NCBI RefSeq assembly: GCF_000315625.1
Contig: NW_005434671.1
Span: 1,041,170 to 1,105,169 of the forward strand
From: Guillardia theta CCMP2712
Taxonomy: Eukaryota; Protista; Cryptophyta
Length of the DNA stretch: 64,000 nucleotides
Direction: 5' to 3'
The translations under genes were made by a program, and so were the position numbers. This document shows, piece after piece, positions 1 through 25,207 of this stretch. How positions within the stretch are numbered: the stretch's first letter is position 1; each line of letters opens with the position of its first letter. The notes under the pieces are model-generated. The model worked only from the letters and a program-made list of their open reading frames with translations, was not told the DNA's origin and made no database searches.

Positions 1-119
1 GCTCTTTCCCACTATCCTTCTCTCTTCATTCCTTCCTCTGTTCTATTTTACCCTTTCTACTCTCCTCCCTCCTTTCCTCTGCCTCGTTTTCTCCTCCCCT
101 TCCTCCTCTCCTCTCACCA

Positions 120-3100
120 AACGTGTCTGGAACAAGATCGCTCTCGACGTATTGTACAAGTTGTTCGGACTGCACAAGAAATTGTCGATCAAACAGAATC
201 ACGGCATCAAGATTTGAAATTTTACCTGAAAAACAGCAAAATGCAGCCTCCTCTCCCAGAGTCCCTTCGAAAGTTGTGAGTTGCTGTGACTTTCGGCCAT
301 TTCTAACCTGGTCAAGAAACAAGTTTGCAAGGAAAACTGCTCTCTCCCTGCGAAAGAAATTCAGACATGCTTTGGAAGGGATGGGGACGAGAACAGCATG
401 TAGACAAGAACAGCATGTAGACGAGACAGAATTGTTCTTGATGTTCTTTGTGATGATGACGATGATGATGACGATGGTGGTGGTGGTGATGAGGAGGAGG
501 AGGAGAAGGATGGGGAGAAAGGCAGAGAGGAGCAGGAGGGAAAAAGGGGCAGGAAGGCACGGGAGCAGGATCAGATTTCTCTTTGATGGAACCTGTCGTA
601 ATTGTTGACAACTCGGACGAACTCCATGTAATGTTTGTGAATTCCCTGTCACCTCAACCATGAGTCCCTTCAAGACTGTTCCCGTCCTCTACCTCCGCCA
701 CATCAAGATCCTCGTCCCTCAGCAGCTTCTCAAACGTTTCACAAAGGACCTGGAAGCTCTTGTCAAGCACGGGCGATGATAGCAAGAGACACGTGTTCAT
801 TCCGTCGACAACAACACAACGAGGGGGCGAAAACACCAGAAGCAAATTCATCACCATCAACACTCATCACCATCGACACTCATCACCATCGATATGTCCA
901 TCACAATCTGTCAACAGCAACATGGCGGGAGGAAGTACCGAGAGGCAGTCCTCGTCGAAGAGGTTCGGGTATAGGTGAATGCTATGAGACATCATCCAGC
1001 GAACGTCCGCTGCCAGCTCGTCAGCCTCGTCCGACCGGTGAACGTCTCTTACATTCATCGTCCTCGCACATGCACTTGTACACTACCAGCGCCTCCGCCC
1101 AGGCCACCCCAGCCTCCTTGCAGAGACGAAGAGCCGCGGGGAACTAAGACAGTGAAACCATGAGGGGGGGGAGAGTTAAGAGAATATGGAAGGGGAGGCG
1201 GGAAGAAGACTTGACAGAGAAGGAAGAGCAGCAGATCAAAGAGAGGAGTACGAGAAGCTGGAGGAGAACAAGGAGGAGGAGGAGGAGGAGGAGGAGGAGG
1301 AGGAGGAGGAGGAGGAGGAGGAGGAGGAGGAGGAGCACTGGAATGAACATAAGCAGAACCTGATAAGCGAGAGCGATTGGGTCGGTGATAGGAGGGACCA
1401 AAAACCATCTTCATCCCATCCTTCAAACGACCAGTCAGTGGAAATCTCCTGTTCCCCTCCTCTATCTCCGTTTCCCCATCCTCCCTCCTCCCTCCTCCCT
1501 CCTCCCTCCTCTCTGCTGTGCTGCCTTCTCTCACCTTGACTGTTATGTAACTTCCATCTTCCGACACCTGACTGATAGTTACATCGAGACTTGAAATCAT
1601 CGCCTCCACCTTCCAAACTCCATCTGGGAGCTCCACGTGTCGTTGAGCAAGATACGCGCTGTAAGAAGCCTATGGATAGCATGAGAAAAGGAGAGGGAAG
1701 GGAGGAGAAGGTGAGGAGAGGAGTGAAAGGATGGAAAAGAAGGGGGGAGGGGGGGCAGAAAGACGAGAGGAGAAGTGAAAGTGGAGGAGAGGCGGAGAAA
1801 AAGCAAGGAAACTAAAGTCAAGGAGCAAGAGAACGATAAACAGACAGATAGACAGATAGACAGGAAGACAGATAGAGAGATAGAGAGATAAACAGACAGA
1901 CAGACAGACAGATAGACAGATAGATAAACAGACAGACAGATAGATAGAGAGATAGACAGACAGACAGAACTTATTCTCACCTGCATTGCTCGAAGCCAAC
2001 AAAGCCTTCGCTCCCATGTCGAGGGGATCACGCTCAAGATGATTGGTAGCTGGAGCAAGTGATGACAAGTGCAAATCAGATTTGAGATTCCATGGCATGC
2101 AGGAACAGAGACATGCACAAGATATTCAAAAGAAGACATGCTCTACAAGCAGTGCATATCAATTTCTCGTCACCTGACAGTGAAGTTTCACAGACAAGTT
2201 CGACGTTCTCTGATCATTCCAACTCCAGGCGCAAACCTTGAGAGTACATGTAAGCTCGACCATCGAAGAAAGTCGGCGACTGACAATGGCCGGATTCAAG
2301 AAATTCTCTTTCACGTCTCCCGGCATGCTCGAACAAACTTCCAAGATGTCCTGTCGGCTACTCAACCATGGAACAAGACCTCATCATACACTCACTTGAA
2401 TCACAGGGTGAAACGCTTCCAACGCTGCTGTCTTCTGCATTCGCCGTCAGCATTCACAGAGCCTCGCTCTGACCTTTTACAGCTTCTCCGCGGAGGTTGA
2501 TGAGCAGGCGGCAGAGACCTGCCGGTTGAGATGAGAGGCAGGGAGGAGAGGAGGAGATCTGTGCTCACTGGGTAGGAACCCGCAGAGATAGACGTGGAAG
2601 ATGAGACATTCGATCATCGCCTGCGAGACAAGATCAGTCGTCAGAGTCGTGTGAAGATGCAGGAGAACAAAAGGATCAAAAATCATGTACAATGTCGCCC
2701 GTCAGTTGCCAATGATCAGAGAGAGAGAGGGAGAGCGAGAGGGGGAGACAGAGAGGGAGGGAGGGAGGGAGGGAGGGAGGGAGGGAGGGAGGGAAGGGGA
2801 GAGGAAAGAATGGGAGCAGGAGGAAAGAATCTCAACCCACAGCAGCTTCTACAAAATCTCTCCTCCTCCTCACCTTCCAGGGCCTTGCCGCATGGCTCCA
2901 ATCGTGCATCTCTCCTCCTCGAAACACTGCAAGTGCTGCTTCCATATACCTGCTCCCTGCTCAACTTCCTCCCTCCGCTCTTGTTCCCTCCCCTGCCTCC
3001 CACCTCCTCCTCCCCGCCCTTTCCCCATGTCCTCCTCCTCTTCCTCCTCCTCCTCCTCCTCCTCCTCCTCCTCCTCTTCCTCCTCCTCCTCGCCTCCCTC

Positions 3101-6100
3101 ACCTCTCTTCGATTGTCTTGATGGCACTGAGCTTGATCTGAGGGTCTTCGTTGGAGCTGCTCTCGTTGTCAGATCAACGGACTTCTGCCCTCCTTTCTTC
3201 CTCCCCCACCTCAACAGGTCCAGGTGCATGGCCCGGATCTCGCTAGCAACGTCGCATCCTGCCTCATCCTTCAACCCTCCTCCTCCCCTCCCGTCAGCAA
3301 CTGACCGCTGTTTGACGCTGAGTAGTGCAACTGCCCCAGCAGCTGCGCCAGTTTGACTTGGTCGACATCCTGGGGGAACTTCAAAATTCCCGCACGAGGG
3401 GTCGGAGAGGCTCACAGGGTGTTGAATGCAGGGCATGGTGAAGTTTTCGATGAACTCTCGCCCGAGAACTCCGCTTAGCAACTGAGATCGCAGTCAGAGT
3501 CATACCAATGGTGACTGAAACATAGTGCTTGTGTAACAACATTACTATTAGCAACATGAACATTATCATTCTTAACACCATCACCATCGCCGTCGTTATC
3601 ATCATGTCATGATCGCTACATTCATGATAGAACATCTCAGACGACAAGGCACACAAGAATCATCTCATAAAACAAATCAATTCACTCATGACATGGAACA
3701 GCAGCGCAAAGGTGATCACTCAAGGTAAAGACCTGCAGAGCGTCGAGCATGCCGTGTTTGGGAACAAGATCGAGAGGTTCTGCGGTGAGTGAGAAGGGAG
3801 AAACGTTTGCTTCCCACTCATCAACCGGAGTATTGTGTGTTTGAAAGACGAAGAGCACCGTGACGAGGGACCTGGAGGAAACATGACGAAGGTGTAGATG
3901 AGAGGAGGATTAGATGTGTAGGCGAAGCGAGGGAGGACGAGAGGAGGAGCAAGCAGTGAACGAGAGATGGAATGCGGAGAGAATAGGACAGGACAGGAGA
4001 GGGGAGGGGAGGAGAACACAGGAGAGAAGAGGAGCGGAGAGGAGAGGAGAGGAGGGGAGGGGAGGGGACAGGACAGGACAGGACAGGACAGGACAGGACA
4101 GGACAGGACAGGAAGTGACGACGATACTCTCGGATCTCATATAGTCACGATGTTGTTATGCTCACCTCGGAGTACTCGTAGGAACCTGACTGCATCTGCT
4201 CCTTGGTGATCTTGGTGCCGTGCCATGTTCTGATAGCAGTCAAGTGCTCCCAAGGTAAACAAGACCATCATGCAGACATGCCACGAGGAGTGCAGAGAAG
4301 TGATGAGTGAGAAAGATGTAATGATGAGGAGAAGCAGAGTGACGAGAACACTTGCAAACAAAAGAGACGGGGAAAGAACAACAAGGGACAACAACAAGGA
4401 ACAACAGCAACAAGGAAGGATAAGAAGAGAAAAGAAGGATGAGATGCACAGCAGCGCTTCTCACCGGTCCAACACCGCACTCTCTTTGAAAGATCCTTCT
4501 AGCCCGATACTGAAGTCATCGTCCATAACGCACAAGTTCTGCAACACGATGATGAGACAGGCGTCGAAGAATGAGCATGCAAGATCAGAGCTTAAGGAAA
4601 ACTTGTCTCTCCTCTCTCCTCTTGCTACCTGTCTGGACATGTTTTTCGGAAGCGACATCAGTTGCCCTGCTTTCTTGAGCACTCGCTTGAAGGCGCTTTT
4701 CTCTGCTTCGTTCCCTAGGTTTCGATCAGAATCAGAAACTGATCCTAGCAAGAGGATGAAGAGTAGAAGCTGAAAGAGAGGAGGAGGAGGAGGAGGAGGA
4801 GGAGGAGGAGGAGGAGGGCGGAGATGGGGAAAGGGACGGGGATAAGGACGAGGACGAGGAATTTATAGGAGAAGGAGAAGGATCCAAGATGTACAAGAAG
4901 ATGTACAAGAAGGTTTGAACGTAAATCAAACAGGAGATGGAGGGCAAAAGCGAAAATAAGAGGTTTTAGGAAGAGGGGGAGGGGGGAAGAGGAAGGGGGA
5001 AGATGATGAGGAGGAGAGGGGGGGGCAGCAGCAGGGATGGTACTGACCCGCTAGTTTGGAAGGGTCTGCCTCTCCGGAGATGTGTATAACAGTAGACGAG
5101 CCGTGCCAAGACCTCTCCTTGACGCTGACCATCTTCTTGGCAGCTGAGAACAAGACAGCGGAGTTACTTGAAACATCGGGAAGCAGCGGAAGGAGACTGA
5201 GTGAGGATGAAGGAAAGGCAAGGCAGGGAAAGAATGAGCGTTCACTTGAGTGGTCGACGGAGTTCGTGTCGCTGATGAAAAGATCTGAGCTGTCTGAAAG
5301 GACATTATAGTCATGACAAATAACACGTAGAGGAAGATAAGGACGAAGAGTAGTATTAGCAGTAGTAGTTGATCTAGCAGAAAAAGTAGGAGGAGAGGGA
5401 GTAGGAGGAGGAGGAGGAGGATGGAGAGGGAAGAGGAGGAGGAGGAGGGGTAGGAGGAGAGCAGAAATGTTCACCTGAGTCGTAGATGACACCGTTCAGC
5501 TCCTTGACAAGGATATCGTATGGAACATGGAGGGCAATAGAGCAGAGCGCCTGCAACAATAACGACGGCACGGGATCAGCAATTTCCTGTCATCTGCTGA
5601 ACAGAACCCTCCATCCCTCCTTCATCCTTCTTCATCCCTCCTTCATCCAGCATTTCTCTCTCTCTCACCTGTGGAGCCTCTCTCGCCAATTCGCGAAGAG
5701 CATCAACACGTTTTTCCCGCGAGCCGTGAAGGAGCTAGAGGGATGTCAGTATATATCTCCTCCTCCTCGTCCATCTCCAACTCCTCCTCCCCCTCCTCTC
5801 TCTGTCTCTGTCTCTCGCTCGCTTGCTCAATCCCCCCTCCCCCCGGCCTCCTCCTCCTCCTCCTCCTCCTCCTCTCCCTTCTTCTCCTCCTCTCCTTCCT
5901 CCTTTGCCACAAGCCTATTGTGTCCCTTCTCCTCTTCCGCACTCACTTGCTCGCTGACTATACGGAAAAGCGTTCCCAGTGAGGACAGTTTTCCGAAATC
6001 TGGAGAAAGTTGAGCGAAAAGGGGGAGAAAAGACAGTTGCAATGAAGTGAAAATCAAGAAGGAAGAGAGTGGAAAAGGACAATAAAAAGGCAAAGGAAAA

Positions 6101-9100
6101 CAATATGAAGACATTCAAATCATTTGATAAAGATACAGAAAGAAAGGCAACAAGTCTAGTCAAGTCAAGTCAGGTCAGGTCAAGTCAAGTAAAGCAAAAT
6201 CAAGTCACCATAAGACCAGAACAGGACAAGAAAAAGAGACAAGGGAGGACGAAGGTGAGGAGAACTATTGGCAGTGGGAGATAGCAAGGTCAGGATATCA
6301 CCGGTGGTATCAAGGTCAAGATCAACCATCACCGAAGGGTTCAGCTGCCCCAGCACTTCGCACGCCTGCTCTTTCGTCAATCTCGTCATGACATGAGACA
6401 CATCGCTGACCGCCGTCCAGGCGATGGAGGCCGACGAGGACTTGAATTGGTTGAGGAAGGAACTGAGGCGATGCTCGTAGATCTGTCCAAGGGCAAGATG
6501 GAAGTCGCCAAGAACGATCAGCGATGATCCGCAAAAAGCAAAGATGAAGACATCGAAGAAGTGCGGGCAGGCGGGAAGTAATGAAGGCAGGCAGACAAGG
6601 ATTGTGGGAGGGAGGGAGCTAAAGAAAGCACGAGAGAACGATCAGCACCATGCAAACATCTCAGGTGGACAGTGTTGACACGAGACATCTGGCTCAAGAC
6701 ATCTCACTCACATCAGTCGTTGAGAAGCTGATGTTCTGATTTCCATTGATCGCTACAATCTCTCCACACGTCGAGGCTCCTCCCTGCTCCCGTCGTTACC
6801 AGACGCCCTCCCAACAGAACCTCGCTGTGCTATTACCCCTTCTCCTATCCTGAGCGCTGATTTCGTCCCCTTGTAGAGGAAAGAAGTTCAGAAAAAAACA
6901 CCACTGGTCACCTCTCACCTTCCTAATCTTGTTCAAGTCTGCATACGACGCTTCTCCGAACTGAAACAAGGCGCTCAATCACACGCGGTAGGGAGGTAGA
7001 TGAAAGGGATACCTTGAACCCCGTGATCCCCTGTGAAAGCATCCGCACCGCACACGAGCGGAACCTGAAGAACGAGTTAGGAAGGAAGGAGCGTGTGAGG
7101 GACAGGAAAGAGTTAGGACGAGGAGGGAGGAGATGCAGGAGAAGGAGAGAGCGAAGGGTGCCGAGAAGGTCGTACAAGCTAGATCCAAGCACAGGTGTAT
7201 GCGGAGGAGATCGGGGAAGGAAGTTGGGGGGGGGAGGCAAGACAGAGGGAGGAAGCAAGGAGAGAACCTCTCAATGTTGCTCCTCGGAGTTGCATTCCCG
7301 GCATCTTTCGTCTTCAATTGATAGTCCTGTCATGCCACGTCACCGACTACCTCGCTCTCTACTGCTGCTTGTGCCTCCGGCGTTGCCATCATCACTACCC
7401 AGTTGCAAATGTTGTGGGGAAGCTGAAGAGGTTGTGAGGAGGACCAGCAGACGAACTCCCAACAGCGCGAACCTCTTTGAAGAACGTTTGAAGATCGACG
7501 GCAAATGTCAATGGAAGCAGCTCCACCTAGTGACGAGAATTCAGAGATAGCACTTTCCGATATTTTATCTCCTTCTTCTGCCTTCTCCTCTCTCTGTCTC
7601 TCTCTGTCTCTTTCTTTCACACGCGTACACACATACAAACACAACACACACTACCTTCCTACCTCCCCCTCAATCTTTCCTCCCTCTCTGCCTCTGCCTC
7701 TTCCCATCCCTCAAGCTCCCCCCCCTCTCCCTCCTTCTGTCTTCCTCCCAGCTTCACTGATCATGCTCGACACCTGAAATATCATCGTCCCTCGGTTGCT
7801 CGCTGACTTCTTCCCTCCTGGTTTGATCAGAGTCCCAGTGAGGCTGACCGCATTCGGACTGTCGCAACTTTGTGAGCTAACAAGGACGAGAGCGGAACAC
7901 GGTCCCAACCTGATCCCCATTTCCATCCACTTGTCTGAAGTATCTTCGTCTTGAATGTCTTGCACTGAGAGGGCAGAAAGATCAGACGTCAATATGCTCG
8001 ATCAAGGTAAGGACGCACTGGAAGAAGAGAACTCATCGAAGGGGATCTTAAAGCTCCCGATGAACTTCGGTCGGAGAACCCTCCTTTCTGTGACCTCGAC
8101 GCTCAACTGACAGGTCAAGTCAGGTTGACAGGTCCGACGGCGCCCCCCGTCCCCCGCCCCCCTTTCCCCCCCCTCGAATCGCTGAAGGGCTTCCAACGCA
8201 CACCTGAGCATTTCGTAGCCGGGGGCCCTCCTGCCGTGATTGTACTCAGCCAAACATCTCAAAGTGAAGTGAAGGAGGGGCAGCAGAGTCAAGCAAGGAG
8301 TGTGCTTCATCCGCCCAATCTGGATCATCAAACGGCAGGGGGAACAGCCATGACATAATCCCTGACAACCCCCGAAATGCGCTCTCTAACTTCCGACCCC
8401 AGGTGTACACGAGTAACAGTACAAGGCAGGATACGATGCTTACATCCAGCACGAAGCTGAGAATGTCGGCGAAGTACATGGTACAGCCATCTGCAACACA
8501 AGATCATCCCTGGTCGGCCTCGAGACATGCCTCCACTGCCCCTCACCGATGTCCAGCTTCACATTCATAGGAGGAGAAATGTAATCGTTGGTCTCAGGGC
8601 TCCAGACCTGGGAGCCGAACTTAGCCAGAGTACGGGAGCTTCAAGTACAATGAAGTTCAATGTCACCCCGATCGAAGCGAGGATCGGACTCTTGGGCGCC
8701 TCATACAAGCTTCCTGTCAGAAGTCGGAACTGCAGAAGAGTTTTAGGAACCGTACTGATTTCCCTGTGTTATACCTTGAACATTCTTGTGGCCACCATGA
8801 AGGATTCAGTGCTGGGAACTGCGAGAAACTTAAGAGGCTTGCGAATCCGTGTGCAATTCTTGCTCACCACAGTGTAGCTTGCCACGACGACTCTGCGAGC
8901 CTCGTCGCTTGAAAGACATCATGTACAATGGCTCAGGTAATGCAGGTGTCTTGTCGCAGAGAAAATCAGATCATTCGTCTTGGTTCAGCTGCAGGCATTC
9001 GCAGTCAGCTCATGAAACCCTGCTACTTCCGCTGACGGCACGAGGAGACTTGAGGAGAGGTGCAGGATCTCCATCTACCCTCAGACTGTCTGGGCCTCCA

Positions 9101-19149: not shown

Positions 19150-21900
19150 ATTTAGGAGTGCCGTGGGACCATACCATCCGCGAACCTGCATCCGAAGTTT
19201 CTTCTCCAAATGAAACTCCGGTAAGAATGATTCTTTTGTTTCCCTCGTCGTGATTGTAGTCTGAGTGTATGTCCCTGATCTAGTTGTTTTTTGAATACAT
19301 TCTTGTCCCCGTTCTCGCCCTTCGAATTCCTGTCTTGTGGGGGTTGGTTCGGCTCTAGATCCATCCTGTCGTCCTCTGCGGTGTCAGGAGTCAGTATAAG
19401 GAAGCTCTCGTGCTCTACACTCACTTGCTGCACGTCCCTCCTCCCTCGAGGATCCGCCATGGCTGCCGCAGACGAGCCGATGCTCCGAGAGAAGCCGCCG
19501 GCCTGCCATGACGCTCCATTGGTGACCTGGTGGGTGAAGTAGGGGATGGAGGATGAGGAACTTTGCAACGGCCCTGGCAGGGAGGTCAGGAGGAGACTGA
19601 TGGCAGGTCGAGTCGCAAGAGCTCACTGGGCTCAGCGACGGTGGAGAAGGAAGGGGAAGCAGCTGAGACCGTCGCTGTCCTCGGGTAGGAGGGGCCCGCT
19701 GACATGTTGATTGGGCGGTGGGTTTGCCAGGTCTGTCCAGAGCTTGGGAGGTACTGGCAAGAGGAAGGTGACGGGAGTCGAGGAGAAGCTTCTCCTCTCC
19801 TCACCTGATGACGGAGGGGCGGCTGGGGTTCGTTGACTCGGATGAAGATGCCGGGAGGAGGAGGAGCATAGAGAGGACGCGCGTAGGTCTGGGGAGCATA
19901 GGGGGGGTACATGCGGCCATCATAGCGATCGGGAGGCGGAGCTCGGCCGGAGCTTGCAGCCCGTTCAGCCTGCAAAGAGGAGGTCAAAACCCCAGCGCCA
20001 TTCCCCCTCCCCTCCCAGCACCAGCAGAGCCCCTGCTGGTCGAGCGCGGTCTTCTCTCGGGGCCTGGGGAGCTGGGGAGCTGCTGGGGACAGCACCTGCA
20101 CGACGAGAACTCTGAGAGCGGAGGAGGAACTCATCCGCCTCAGGAGCAGCGTGTCCTTGCATGCTCGTCGCCTGTCCCGAGAAATCGCTCGCATGCACCT
20201 GCACGCATGGGGTGAGGAGGGGAACAGCCGGTGGGCTGCCACTGACATTGTAGAAGGGACGGGGGGCAGGAGGAAGCGGCCTCGTTTCAGCCTCAGGTTC
20301 GATCAGAGGGCTGTAGGATAGGAAGAGATCGATGCTCGCTGTCCTCCCCGGGCCCATAGCCAACAACCTGAGCCAACCGCCCCGTTAGCTACCAGCAGGC
20401 CACAGGGCCTCCTCCTCTGTATCTCAACCTGCCGCTTCTATCCATGAGGGTAAGAGACATGGACGGGAAGAGGTCCCCGAGTCGAGATCGTATCCTCGCC
20501 TTCCCCACCAACTGAAAGTCCTCCCCGTCCCTGTCGTTGCACAGGAACAACACGATCATGATGTCCCTCTCGTGGTTGTCCGTGACGTGATGTACGTCCC
20601 CGGACGCCGCGGCCTCCCGGCTGTAAGTTTGCAGCAGGACCGACGAGGAAGCTGGGTGCTGGAGGAGCGACGCGTCCTCCATCGGCGGCGCTTCTCCTGG
20701 GTCCAGGAACAAGATGCAGCCATGCAGGCGCCTGCCTGGCGCAACGGCAGGCAGGGAATGCAAGCGCAGAATCTTCATGACGATCCTGTTTTGACCCTTC
20801 AAGAAGGTCTGGGGGATGTGGTAGGCCTTTGCCTGCATGCTGTGGGTCCCATCGTCATGCCAGGAGGAGGAAGATGGTTGCCTGACTTGCTGAGAAACCT
20901 GCGGCGTATTCCCCTTGTCAACTTTCTGCACAGGAAATTTCGAGCGAGCGGAGGAGCGATACGCTTCGAGACGAGGGAACTTGAACTGCGAGAACTTGAA
21001 GAGGCCCTTGATCTCATGCCGCGAGCCTGTCTCGTTGTTCAGGATAGACATCGCCTCCTCTGCGTCTTGACATGCAAGCAGCCGCTTCTGAACCTTGCTG
21101 ATGAAGGCCATGGATACTCGGAAGAGACAGCCGCTGTTTGAAGAGAAGAGCTTGTCGAGGATCTTGAGGATCATACTCTGGTCAAAGACCACGGTGAACA
21201 AGCTCAGGAACCATCTCGTCGCAGGAATCTCCAGAGGAAGCTCCAGCTCCTGAAGTTTCCTGTGGACCTTAGGAAACGTCTCCACAACGAGGTTCTGCAG
21301 AACGAGCAGGTCCACACGCAGACCATGCATGTCCTCAGTGTAGTAATCTGGTAGGTAGTCTTCCACGATGCAACTGAGAATCCAAAAGGCGTCCTCCTCC
21401 TCCATCACCATGAGCAGCGTCCCCACTATGAAGTTCATCGACTGACAGTACCCTATCCTCGGGTTGCGCAAGCTGTAAGCACAGAGCACCCTGCGAAGGG
21501 GTCGAAGAAGGGGCCCATCTTGTCCTACCGTCTGACCTGCTTCTCCTGGACCCCTTGGAGGATCCGAGTCCTGAGTAACTTTGCGAAAGAGGGGGTTAGC
21601 AGGAAAGGTCCTACCAATGTCCTTGTCAATCTGCTTGAAGTGCATCATTCTCCTCTCCTCAGCATCTGCGTCGCACATCCCCGCCCATCTCCCATCTTCA
21701 TGCCCACTCGTCTCATTCAGAGCACCATCGCCCTGAACGCTGGCTTCACTGGGCACCCTCGCCAACAGCTCGAGGTACCCTTCGGAAGCCCTTTGCTTCT
21801 TCATGGTGAACCTGCATGCTTGCTTCCAGGAGAGCACGCGTGCCTTCTCTCTCACTCTGCCTTCCATCACGTTCCTGGCCTTCTCTTCTCTCTCTGCCAT
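19150..21900 (-). CDS. TBC-domain Rab GTPase-activating protein with a C2-like domain and low-complexity C-terminal exons
   Basis: QIDKDIGRTF (IxxDxxR), LRRVLCAYSLRNPRIGYCQSMNFI (YxQ), EEDAFWIL, TRWFLSLF; C2-like end LVGKARI..LTLMDRSG|RLLAMGPGRTASIDLFLSY; 3' end uncertain, near the gap. Confidence 0.85.
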
Positions 21901-22253
21901 CGTCACTCCGCCATCATCCCGCCATCATCGTCCAACCATGCGCCTCGTGGTGCATGGCAGCGGGCTCACGTTACAAGAGGGCCAACCCCTACAAATCGTT
22001 TTCACTCAAAGATTCCTCCTGCTATTCCCCCAGTCACCCGGCCTCCGTCCCGCTGGGGCTGTCGGGGCCCCGCCGGACCGGGTCACAATAACGAGGCCAA
22101 CTCGAGTACGAGATTCTACGGGCATGCACAACTTCTGACACTGCGAGTCTAGTTTTCAGTAAAGAGATGTCTGCTGGAATATCACCATCCACATCATCTT
22201 TTAATACTTATTTCATTTCGTTTTTCTTCGGCCCTCCTTACTCAGTTGTCTCC

Positions 22254-24254
22254 TCACTTCTTGCCTCCTGCTGCTGCTGCCTTACCCGGCTGCTTCTTCG
22301 TGACCTCCTTGATGACGCCGACAGCGACAGTCTGTCGCATGTCACGAACAGCGAATCTTCCCAGAGGAGGGTATTCTGTGAACGTCTCGACACACATGGG
22401 CTTGCTGGGCTGCATGATCACCATGGCGGCGTCGCCATTCTTAATCATCTTGGGCTCATCCTCAACTTTCTTTCCACTTCTGCGGTCGATCTTGGCTTCC
22501 AACTGCGCGAACTTGACGGCAATATGAGCAGTATGGCAATCCATCACGGGCGTGTAGCCAGCATGAATCTCTCCAGGGTGGTTGAGGATGATGACTTGAG
22601 CCTTGAAGGTCTCACAGCCAAGAGGAGGATCATTCTTGGTATCACCGCAGACGTATCCACGCTTGATATCCTTCACAGAGAGACCCTTGACGTTGAAGCC
22701 GACGTTGTCACCTGGCACCGCCTGTTGCAGCTGCTCATGATGCATCTCAACAGACTTGCACTCAGTGGTGACGCCAGCTGGAGCGAAGGTGACCGACATT
22801 CCAGGCTTCAAAATTCCAGTCTCAACACGGCCGACAGGAACCGTTCCGATTCCTCCAATCTTGTACACATCCTGTAGAACACAGTTGAGTCCACGACAAC
22901 AATGAGTATCGAACCATCACCTGGAGAGGAAGGCGGAGAGGCTTGTCAGTTGGGCGCTTTGGCGGTTCAATGGAATCGAGCGCCTGGAGGAGAGTTGGTC
23001 CAGAGTACCTGAAAGAAGAGGAGAATCAGCTGGCAAAGAAGCATGCATTTAGAAACTGACCATTTCTTCAAGGGGTGGTCAGCAGGAACTTCCTCGATCA
23101 AGTTCTCTCCTGTCCATCCTGAAAGAGGGATCTGATACCAAGGAGTGAGGCTAATCTCATGGAGGGAGCTAGAGCTATGATGCGCTTTTACCTTAGGGAT
23201 CTTGTCCGGGTTGTAACCGATCTTCTTGAGGTACGAGTTCATCTGACAGCACGGCATGAGGGCTGACGAAACTGCAAGAGAAAAGGAGAAAAGGCCATGG
23301 AGAAGGATACGAAAGGATCAAAGACGCCACGATCATGAGGTCGGGAGGAAGGTAAGAAGAAGACCTCCTTGCAGATCTCATCATAGCGATCCTTGCTCCA
23401 GTTGACCTGGAAATTCCTCGTGAGACCTTCATCGAGAAAACCCTGGTTTGAATCACCTGCTTATCATCCTGCTTGTTCAAACCAACAATGAGCTGCTTCA
23501 CACCTGTACAAATTCAATCAAATCATAACGACAGCACCGCCATCATTCACCGAGAGTGAAAGCCAAGAGGGCGTGCTCCTTGGTCTGGCCGTTGGTGGAA
23601 ATTCCAGCCTCGAACTCACCTGCACACGATTACAACCCAGAGCGGAGAGAGGAAGACGTACCGGGAGGAGAAGCAATCATCAGGATGCCAACATCGGCTT
23701 GCGATGTGCCAGTGATCATGTTCTTGATGAAATCTCTGTGTCCGGGGGCATCGATGATGGTGAAGCTGAACTTCTCAGTCTGCAAGGTGCCAGTCAGCCT
23801 CAAGCATGTCAGCAGCAGCTGACCTCACCTCGAACTTCCAGAGAGCAATGTCAATGGTGATACCACGTTCACGCTCGGCCTTGAGCTTGTCAAGAACCCA
23901 GGCATACTTGAAAGATCCCTTGCCTTTGTTCCAAGTCATCGCTCATGCGCTCAGACAAGTCACAATACCCATCTCGTTGGCCTCCTTCTCGAATTTCTCG
24001 ATCACACGCTTATCAATACCACCGCATTTGTAGAGCAGATGCCCGGTTGTGGTAGACTTTCCGGAGTCAACGTGGCCAATAACAACAATCGAGCAATGGT
24101 GCTTTTCCTTCCCTCCTCCCCTCAGGCGCAGCATGCTTGGAGAAGTACCAGAGGGGATCATGTTCATCCTATGACCCATGGCGCTGAATGTCCTTCCTGC
24201 TGCTCCCATGGTGGTGGCCAACCCCATCAAGAACAGGACAGCAACGCACTTCAT
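22254..24254 (-). CDS. EEF1A: Elongation factor 1-alpha with a 47-aa N-terminal presequence (signal peptide + transit-like linker ending LRLRGG); 10 coding exons
   Basis: [83 protein letters not shown]; nine GT-AG introns can be spliced in frame. Confidence 0.97.
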
Positions 24255-25034
24255 AACGGAGAGATTTATCTGTCCACGGTAAATTCAGAAAACAAACCGT
24301 CTTCGCAACAGGAGACCACAAGATGAAACATCGAAAAGTAGGGAATCCAAGATTAAAATCTCAAGAGATGCATATCTTCGCTCAAGAAAACACAGTTTCA
24401 GATCAAACTCCACAAATCTCAACCACGTTGTTCACCAAACAAAGAGTCCTGTCTCACACACCCCCTCGGATTCAGACAAGAAAAGCAACCACAGGTATCG
24501 AAACTCGGATCCGCCATGTTGCATCATGTTTTCGATCACATTCCGCTGCATGTTCCCCTCCATCCCACTGGGGCCATGCGCCTCTTCCGCTCATACCTGC
24601 CCCGCAGCCGCCATACTAGCACGAGAGCGACTTGCACCCCCCGCTACCCACCTCCCTGATAGCTTCGCTGAGTACCCTACCTCCTTTTCGACCGGAAAAT
24701 ACCCCAATGAGACACGGAAAATCCTACTGCTGCTATTCGTTCAGCCACCCCCACCCCATCAAATTCGCTACGGGGAAGCTACGAGTAAACTCCGCCTCAG
24801 GATATATAGAACGCACACCCCTACCCCTACCCCGTGACCAAATCCCTACCCCCTTGAACACGACACCACCCCTTTATTTCCCTGTATTTACCCTAGCAAT
24901 TCCACGGTTGTACCCCTACCCACCTAAATCCTAACTGTGCGAATGGAGAGGGTGATCGCGGCAGGGAGAGGAGCAGAGGGATAGGAAGGGGAACGAATAA
25001 ATGAAGGACGAAGAAACAGGATGAGGGCGAGCGT

Positions 25035-25140
<106 letters not shown>

Positions 25141-25207
25141 ACTGATAGTCCCTTGGTGGGTGCTGACAGAGTCGGCAGGGAGAGGAGAGAGCAGTGGACT
25201 GAGCCTA

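Follow-up and report, generated by a model that had tools for sequence, protein, structure and literature searches.

Signal-peptide-like leaders ending in the ubiquitin-tail hexapeptide LRLRGG on EF-1alpha and other nuclear-encoded proteins of Guillardia theta

The EF-1alpha gene and its N-terminal extension

The window, that is, the whole stretch of 64,000 nucleotides analysed from Guillardia theta CCMP2712, carries an EF-1alpha gene on its minus strand. The spliced model has 10 exons (24254..22254) and encodes 494 amino acids, comprising a 47-residue N-terminal extension and a complete EF-1alpha. The NCBI protein 'translation elongation factor 1-alpha [Guillardia theta CCMP2712]' (P0192, 505 aa) ends in exactly this 494-residue sequence and has 11 further N-terminal residues, MAAAGQINLSV, which a small exon farther upstream contributes (ATG 24614). 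This 18-nt coding exon, found in the annotated model and in one spliced contig, lengthens the leader from 47 to 58 residues and leaves its nature unchanged. The protein was assigned to eEF1A by Pfam matches to PF00009 (GTP_EFTU, 5e-52), PF03144 (D2), PF03143 (D3), and PF22594 (eEF1A_C), and by alignment of its leader junction with the M|GKEK of canonical proteins. The features of the locus are as follows.

24597..24614, minus strand: optional 5' coding exon, MAAAGQ (sequence, P0192 N-terminus, RNA contig X12)
24270..24596, minus strand: 5' intron of 327 nt, GT..AG (sequence; X12's loose end agrees with splicing)
24195..24254, minus strand: signal-peptide-like segment, 20 residues from ATG 24254 (hydropathy)
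24132..24194, minus strand: transit-peptide-like stretch, 21 residues (composition)
24114..24131, minus strand: LRLRGG (sequence, ORF translation)
22254..24113, minus strand: EF-1alpha proper, GKEK... to stop (gene model, RNA junctions, Pfam)
Exons 1-5, minus strand: exon 1 ends 23969; 23923-23829; 23779-23662; 23619-23551; 23503-23457 (gene model)
Exons 6-10, minus strand: 23406-23365; 23242-23192; 23131-23061; 23008-22921; 22871-22254 (gene model)

On the minus strand, the ATG at 24134-24132 is followed by CTG CGC CTG AGG GGA GGA (24131..24114), which encodes LRLRGG, and directly 3' of these codons GGG AAG GAA AAG encodes GKEK. The ORF from ATG 24254 gave exactly the peptide quoted in an earlier note on this DNA, which had located the ubiquitin-tail hexapeptide here in exon 1 and exactly at the native N-terminus. 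The latter position was also confirmed: canonical EF-1alphas recovered together with the orthologs open with M|GKEK, and the place of their initiator Met is here taken by the motif's second G. As for the neighbourhood, a RabGAP-TBC domain protein (20389-21906, minus strand; Pfam 4e-44) lies downstream, and a perfect (GCAG)n microsatellite of 26.8 copies (25035-25141), whose translation in long spurious ORFs is a CLPA/GRQA repeat, lies just upstream of the locus.

RNA-derived contigs from three runs were mapped over 22100-25000 of the window. All of the nine coding introns were seen as CT..AC joints in contigs X1 and X2 (9/9). X1 was colinear from 23968 to 24626, and hence no splice separates ATG 24254 from LRLRGG. 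This intron-retaining contig keeps the 5' intron, and the upstream ATG then runs into a stop after seven codons; in X12, which joins ...CGGCTGCGGGG(CAG) to ATAAATCTC at the 5' exon junction, the intron is spliced and ATG 24254 stays in frame. Thus, the transcripts include ATG 24254, on which the leader proposed in the earlier note depended. The raw-read run X20 gave coverage at the 3' end of EF-1alpha only. Contig X2 departs from the gene at 24247, only seven bases past ATG 24254, and its continuation maps to C72:38721-38750 with no shared splice signal; we considered an alternative 5' exon there and rejected it, reading the exit as an assembly chimera.

The leader has the look of a targeting peptide, as the earlier note had supposed, judged by hydropathy and composition: a signal-peptide-like segment is followed by an acid-poor stretch rich in Ser and Thr. 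The best Kyte-Doolittle 10-mer of the leader scored 2.84, hydropathy being the only measure by which the signal peptide was judged. The ortholog of Hanusia phi has the same start Met, and by hydropathy every full-length ortholog leader has a comparable hydrophobic core, though the sequences differ. The 21 residues of the transit-like stretch include 6 Ser/Thr and 2 Arg but no Asp/Glu, so that it is acid-poor, hydroxylated, and net-positive; it showed no conservation among orthologs.

A Pfam search (E<=1) showed no ubiquitin domain in the 47-residue leader, in agreement with the earlier note, nor any ubiquitin match near the EF-1alpha gene on contig C3. A hidden ubiquitin exon spliced in before LRLRGG was considered and rejected on that ground and by the colinearity of the RNA over exon 1. 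The locus therefore has the hexapeptide of a ubiquitin fusion directly before the mature partner and lacks the N-terminal beta-grasp fold. Ubiquitin genes of G. theta end in ...LVLRLRGG, so that the commonest leader ending is the exact tail of the organism's own ubiquitin. Two further loci (L009 and L011; G000:C258 and C99) encode ubiquitin in frame with a Cys/His-rich zinc-finger-like tail (AKK..CDHDGC..CKYC.HKFCG.HR), and these fusions are separate from the usual Ub-eL40-like fusion (L013).

A six-frame search of the genome (87.1 Mb, 669 contigs) with the last EF-1alpha exon returned this gene as the sole high-identity match, together with two distant paralogs of 35% and 29% identity. The leader-bearing gene is therefore the only canonical EF-1alpha of the G. 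theta genome. The 29% paralog is of the eRF3/HBS1 type. The 35% paralog is an intronless EFL-like elongation GTPase of 476 aa, which starts MAEKEHLSIV and has no N-terminal extension.

L002 (G000:C2:877142-880741), ORF 1477-2907, minus strand: EFL-like gene (six-frame search)

EFL use is known in cryptomonads (Gile et al. 2006, as cited in PMC4217694), and G. theta is entered in PMC3938643 as 'co-maintaining' both eEF1A and EFL. The EFL-like protein is presumably the factor of the host cytosol. Because the leader sits on EF-1alpha, the pair suggests one elongation factor per cytoplasm, which would recast the reported co-occurrence (PMC3938643) as two factors for two cytoplasms.

Conservation and genome-wide recurrence of the leader ending

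Orthologs were collected by phmmer with 95 residues of exon 1 and by a word-based search (genomic loci L089-L094), and 15 leaders from Hanusia, Hemiselmis, Baffinella, MMETSP, and environmental sequences were right-aligned at the junction. All of the orthologs share diagnostic residues with the G. theta EF-1alpha and carry N-terminal extensions. The leader ended in LRLRGG in Hanusia phi and in an MMETSP cryptophyte (taxon 2898), LRMRGG in Hemiselmis andersenii, MRLRGG in a second MMETSP transcript, and MHLRGG in Baffinella frigidus; environmental contigs gave LRLRGG, LHLRGG, LNLRGG, LQLRGG, and MRLRGG. Conservation of the motif, on which the earlier note had staked its proposal, was borne out: positions -1, -2, and -3 were G, G, and R in 15/15 leaders. 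Position -4 was L in 14/15 and M in 1/15, -5 was R, H, N, or Q, and -6 was L or M. From -7 upstream no residue was fixed, and the leaders were otherwise unalignable. The sequence [GA]K[ED]K directly followed the motif in all 15 orthologs, so that GG coincided with the natural N-terminus, the initiator Met of EF-1alpha being replaced in 15/15, as the earlier note had asked to see. Since P1-P3 are invariant while the upstream leader varies freely, the alignment indicates that the motif is under selection. In an environmental cryptophyte-like contig (L089:4627-5205), an intron lies right after GKDKMH; leader, motif, and six mature residues there form a first exon of their own, unlike in G. theta.

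The genome was then scanned with a degenerate DNA pattern for LRLRGG, which gave 353 matches against 255 for a reversed control. The first 100 of the 353 matches, from the 22 largest contigs (C1-C22), were listed, and among these matches 72 sites beyond EF-1alpha truly encode LRLRGG; none of these 72 listed sites was a ubiquitin gene. Each of the 72 sites was examined with 600 nt on either side for a signal-peptide-like leader, defined as a Met 25-85 residues upstream in the same open frame, followed by a hydrophobic 10-mer with a Kyte-Doolittle value >=1.9. Such a leader preceded the motif at 40 of the 72 sites among the matches listed, as judged by hydropathy. The same leader test was passed by 3.4% of the codons sampled over the window's six frames and by 3.9% in the examined loci, and against this baseline the binomial p is about 2e-37. 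The enrichment after signal-peptide-like leaders predicted in the earlier note was thus observed, on the measure of hydropathy only. The motif is, however, no peculiarity of EF-1alpha, as that note had presented it; its recurrence at 40/72 sites makes EF-1alpha one member of a genome-wide leader class.

After one duplicated gene pair was merged, 39 independent leaders remained among the matches listed, in which the motif was encoded by 38 distinct 18-mers; hence, it is not a copied DNA element. In the 39 leaders, the share of Asp and Glu was 5.3% over the 20 residues ahead of the motif and 16.4% over the 20 behind it (Fisher p 7e-13). Directly after GG stood Met in 4/39 (p 0.01) and Pro in 0/39. 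By scaling 41 per 100 listed matches to 353, about 145 genes are roughly estimated to carry the exact hexapeptide, and variants would add more; the leader ending is thus estimated to be used by one to two hundred nuclear genes. A chance origin of the EF-1alpha motif is excluded on these comparisons, because it is conserved in 15 orthologs and recurs after signal-peptide-like leaders.

One pair of LRLRGG-leader gene copies (L078/L079; G000:C18:773674 minus, 775174 plus), with a weak glycosyltransferase-4 match, lies 1.5 kb apart on opposite strands. Their translated leaders and first 50 post-motif residues are identical, which points to a recent inverted duplication. A similar pair occurs in tandem on C13 (L056/L057); its second copy has no in-frame signal peptide.

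Cargo was named by Pfam at the sites whose first exon extends far enough past the motif. Behind LRLRGG leaders were found a HAT1 N-terminal domain, ribosomal protein eL22, a class II aminoacyl-tRNA synthetase OB fold, a methyltransferase, a RETICULATA-like membrane protein, and a weak match to glycosyltransferase-4. The HAT1 and eL22 orthologs of Hanusia phi retain the ending as LRMRGG and LRLKGG, respectively. For one site (L038), the 31 residues after GG gave no match in Pfam or PDB sequence searches; the peptide, MKLFTHNLL..., may correspond to the N-terminus of TRM112. As far as Pfam matches identify it, the cargo (eL22, HAT1, and aminoacyl-tRNA synthetase) is of cytosolic or nuclear type. 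A signal peptide on a cytosolic or nuclear housekeeping protein would be sensible only in the periplastid compartment (PPC) or the nucleomorph. The one nucleus-encoded protein placed in the nucleomorph with an antibody is the histone H2A GuiTh_1001763 (PMC5443833).

Proposed processing of the leader and competing readings

The anatomy, expression, conservation, genome-wide recurrence, and cargo type of the leader described above are observations; from here on we infer that the protein resides in the PPC, that it is cleaved, and by which enzyme. Taken as a whole, the explanation that we regard as best, with a probability of roughly 0.5, is that the gene encodes an EF-1alpha of the PPC whose leader ends in a ubiquitin-tail motif and undergoes a deubiquitinase-like cut after GG. 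The PPC is what remains of the red-algal cytoplasm, where nucleomorph mRNAs are still translated, and this protein would be its elongation factor, the host cytosol being served by the leaderless EFL paralog. The precursor would consist of a signal peptide, a short acid-poor transit-like stretch, and a terminal [LM]-x-[LM]-R-G-G, a copy of the ubiquitin tail that adjoins the ancestral N-terminus and is found as the same ending in other cryptophytes. After passage through SELMA, a protease resident in the PPC and specific for the ubiquitin tail, either a deubiquitinase or a relative, would cut after GG, with the motif as P6-P1 of the cleavage site. The cut would remove the transit-like peptide and regenerate the native N-terminus, GKEK in the case of EF-1alpha. 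Because the import signal would then be gone, the protein would be kept in the PPC and make no onward move to the stroma.

Import into the PPC uses SELMA, a machine derived from ERAD/ubiquitin components (PMC12412216). The SELMA deubiquitinase assigned in diatoms, ptDUP, belongs to a clade absent from cryptophytes, and the authors expect 'an alternative enzyme' in its place there (PMC12412216). All four sequenced nucleomorphs (4/4) encode a putative deubiquitinase of the ZUFSP/C78 type with no assigned role (PMC6559170), and we found one further C78 gene in G. theta's nuclear genome. When 32 USP loci were scanned, a leader with an xRGG motif was found only in one gene, on contig C13.

G000:C13, about 4750-7975 (5' part L107:2650-4400): USP-family deubiquitinase gene (Pfam, leader scan)

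Its product opens with a signal-peptide-like leader whose last residues are LSLRGG; behind this come a weak ubiquitin-like domain and then the USP Cys-box (GLENLGNTCYM). The product may be a periplastid deubiquitinase. The layout is like that of the proteasome-bound Ubp6/USP14, and it is not an obvious processing enzyme. The nucleomorph-encoded orphan ZUFSP/C78-type enzyme, represented by Gt2_270, and the leader-bearing USP are candidates for a putative presequence peptidase.

An unlikely alternative shares the cut and differs in the enzyme: a periplastid processing peptidase unrelated to deubiquitinases would act at the motif, and the likeness to the ubiquitin tail would be convergent, accounted for by small residues at P1 and P2, Arg at P3, and a hydrophobic residue at P4. 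The boundary evidence fits it equally well. Given the variants LNLRGG, LQLRGG, LRMRGG, LSLRGG, and LRLKGG, only x-[LM]-[RK]-G-G is really fixed. Deubiquitinases, moreover, usually need the ubiquitin fold; most require the globule as well as the tail, and bare LRGG peptides are cut poorly. Convergence leaves unexplained, however, that the most frequent form matches the last six residues of the alga's own ubiquitin exactly, that this exact hexapeptide stands after leaders far above baseline among the matches listed, and that the import machine of the compartment is itself ubiquitin-based.

We also consider improbable, to a similar degree, that the motif stays uncleaved and acts in sorting or recognition, where a SELMA component or a PPC retention factor would read it as the mark of cargo that must stop in the PPC. 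Such a role would suit the enrichment of the motif on cytosolic- and nuclear-type cargo, and the aromatic +1 residue, the only known discriminator between PPC and stroma, leaves some G. theta aminoacyl-tRNA synthetase copies unassignable (PMC4494062). There is also a precedent in the Toxoplasma apicoplast ubiquitin-like protein PUBL, whose leader carries an RGG just before the functional domain; its authors discuss this RGG as a potential deubiquitinase site and report it as unprocessed and dispensable (PMC5487736). By analogy, this outcome would count against deubiquitinase cleavage in G. theta. A recognition element, however, could sit anywhere in the leader, and neither the exact abutment on the ancestral N-terminus, with Met replaced in 15/15 orthologs, nor the Met after GG in 4/39 leaders is explained by it.

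Two further readings fare far worse. It is very improbable that the motif survives from an old fusion of ubiquitin with EF-1alpha or matches by chance and has no function: ubiquitin fusion genes do exist in the genome (Ub-eL40-like and Ub-zinc-finger), but there is no upstream ubiquitin exon or domain and the transcripts are colinear, the motif is kept while the rest of the leader decays, and dozens of unrelated genes share it with different codons. Translation of a cytosolic protein from Met41 (ATG 24134), with the upstream 'leader' as a 5' UTR, could draw on the Met at P7 or P6 of several orthologs, but can be practically dismissed because the ORF is open from ATG 24254 with a strong hydrophobic core, as in every full-length ortholog, RNA contigs cover the whole leader, and the interchange of L and M at P4 and P6 makes Met there most simply a conservative substitution.

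A cut after GG by a periplastid deubiquitinase-like protease, as the earlier note had proposed, thus appears to be the best-supported mechanism on the sequence evidence. More tentative, though still quite possible, is its generalization, in which presequences of periplastid and nucleomorph proteins in cryptophytes would generally be cleaved at the hexapeptide, with a deubiquitinase as the peptidase, and the cut would set PPC against stromal residence. With or without cleavage, the leader ending suggests a putative, undescribed sorting or trimming signal for proteins bound for the remnant cytoplasm. The aromatic +1 residue is the only known rule for PPC versus stromal sorting and leaves cases unassigned. 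The leader-terminal LRLRGG offers a simple sequence marker for the nucleus-encoded PPC and nucleomorph proteome of cryptophytes, a concrete candidate cleavage site, and a possible function for the orphan PPC deubiquitinases. If the proposal is true, an organelle import system has borrowed its maturation step from ubiquitin processing.

Relation to known systems

We found no description of a leader-terminal LRLRGG in open papers and preprints; an earlier description is possible in subscription papers, which lay outside the search. The papers on G. theta targeting, including PMC4494062, give only the aromatic +1 rule.

Ubiquitin fusion precursors are processed by deubiquitinases, which regenerate the native N-terminus whatever its first residue. 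The EF-1alpha precursor is like these precursors (polyubiquitin, Ub-eL40, and Ub-eS31) in that LRLRGG stands directly before the first mature residue. Unlike them, it has no ubiquitin fold, and about 20-45 unstructured-looking residues lie between signal peptide and motif in the leaders. Cysteine proteases that cut a Gly-Gly motif without a ubiquitin fold act at the LXGG sites of coronavirus papain-like proteases and on C39 double-glycine leaders. These sites resemble ours, in an analogy drawn from general knowledge, as short linear motifs ending in Gly-Gly; unlike in G. theta, their contexts are viral or bacterial, and here the corresponding protease is only putative.

Toxoplasma PUBL shares with the present case a complex red plastid import system and an RGG before the functional domain; it differs in being a single protein rather than a proteome-wide leader ending. 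The periplastid EFL of chlorarachniophytes (Gile and Keeling 2008, as cited in PMC4217694) is likewise a nuclear-encoded elongation factor sent to the nucleomorph compartment. In that case, unlike in G. theta, the factor is EFL, the endosymbiont a green alga, and the import system a different one. To our knowledge, no ubiquitin-tail motif occurs in chlorarachniophyte EFL leaders.

The closest likeness is to the bipartite periplastid leaders of cryptophytes and diatoms, which are made up of a signal peptide plus a transit-like stretch that lacks an aromatic +1 residue (Gould et al. 2006; cited in PMC4494062 and PMC5443833). The leaders described here resemble them in a putative signal peptide at the N-terminus, ahead of an acid-poor, hydroxylated, positive stretch, and in their probable cargo, housekeeping proteins of the remnant cytoplasm and the nucleomorph. 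No terminal consensus motif for bipartite periplastid leaders was described in the papers searched, and what sets the present leaders apart from those described is that a large number of G. theta genes end theirs with the ubiquitin-tail hexapeptide.
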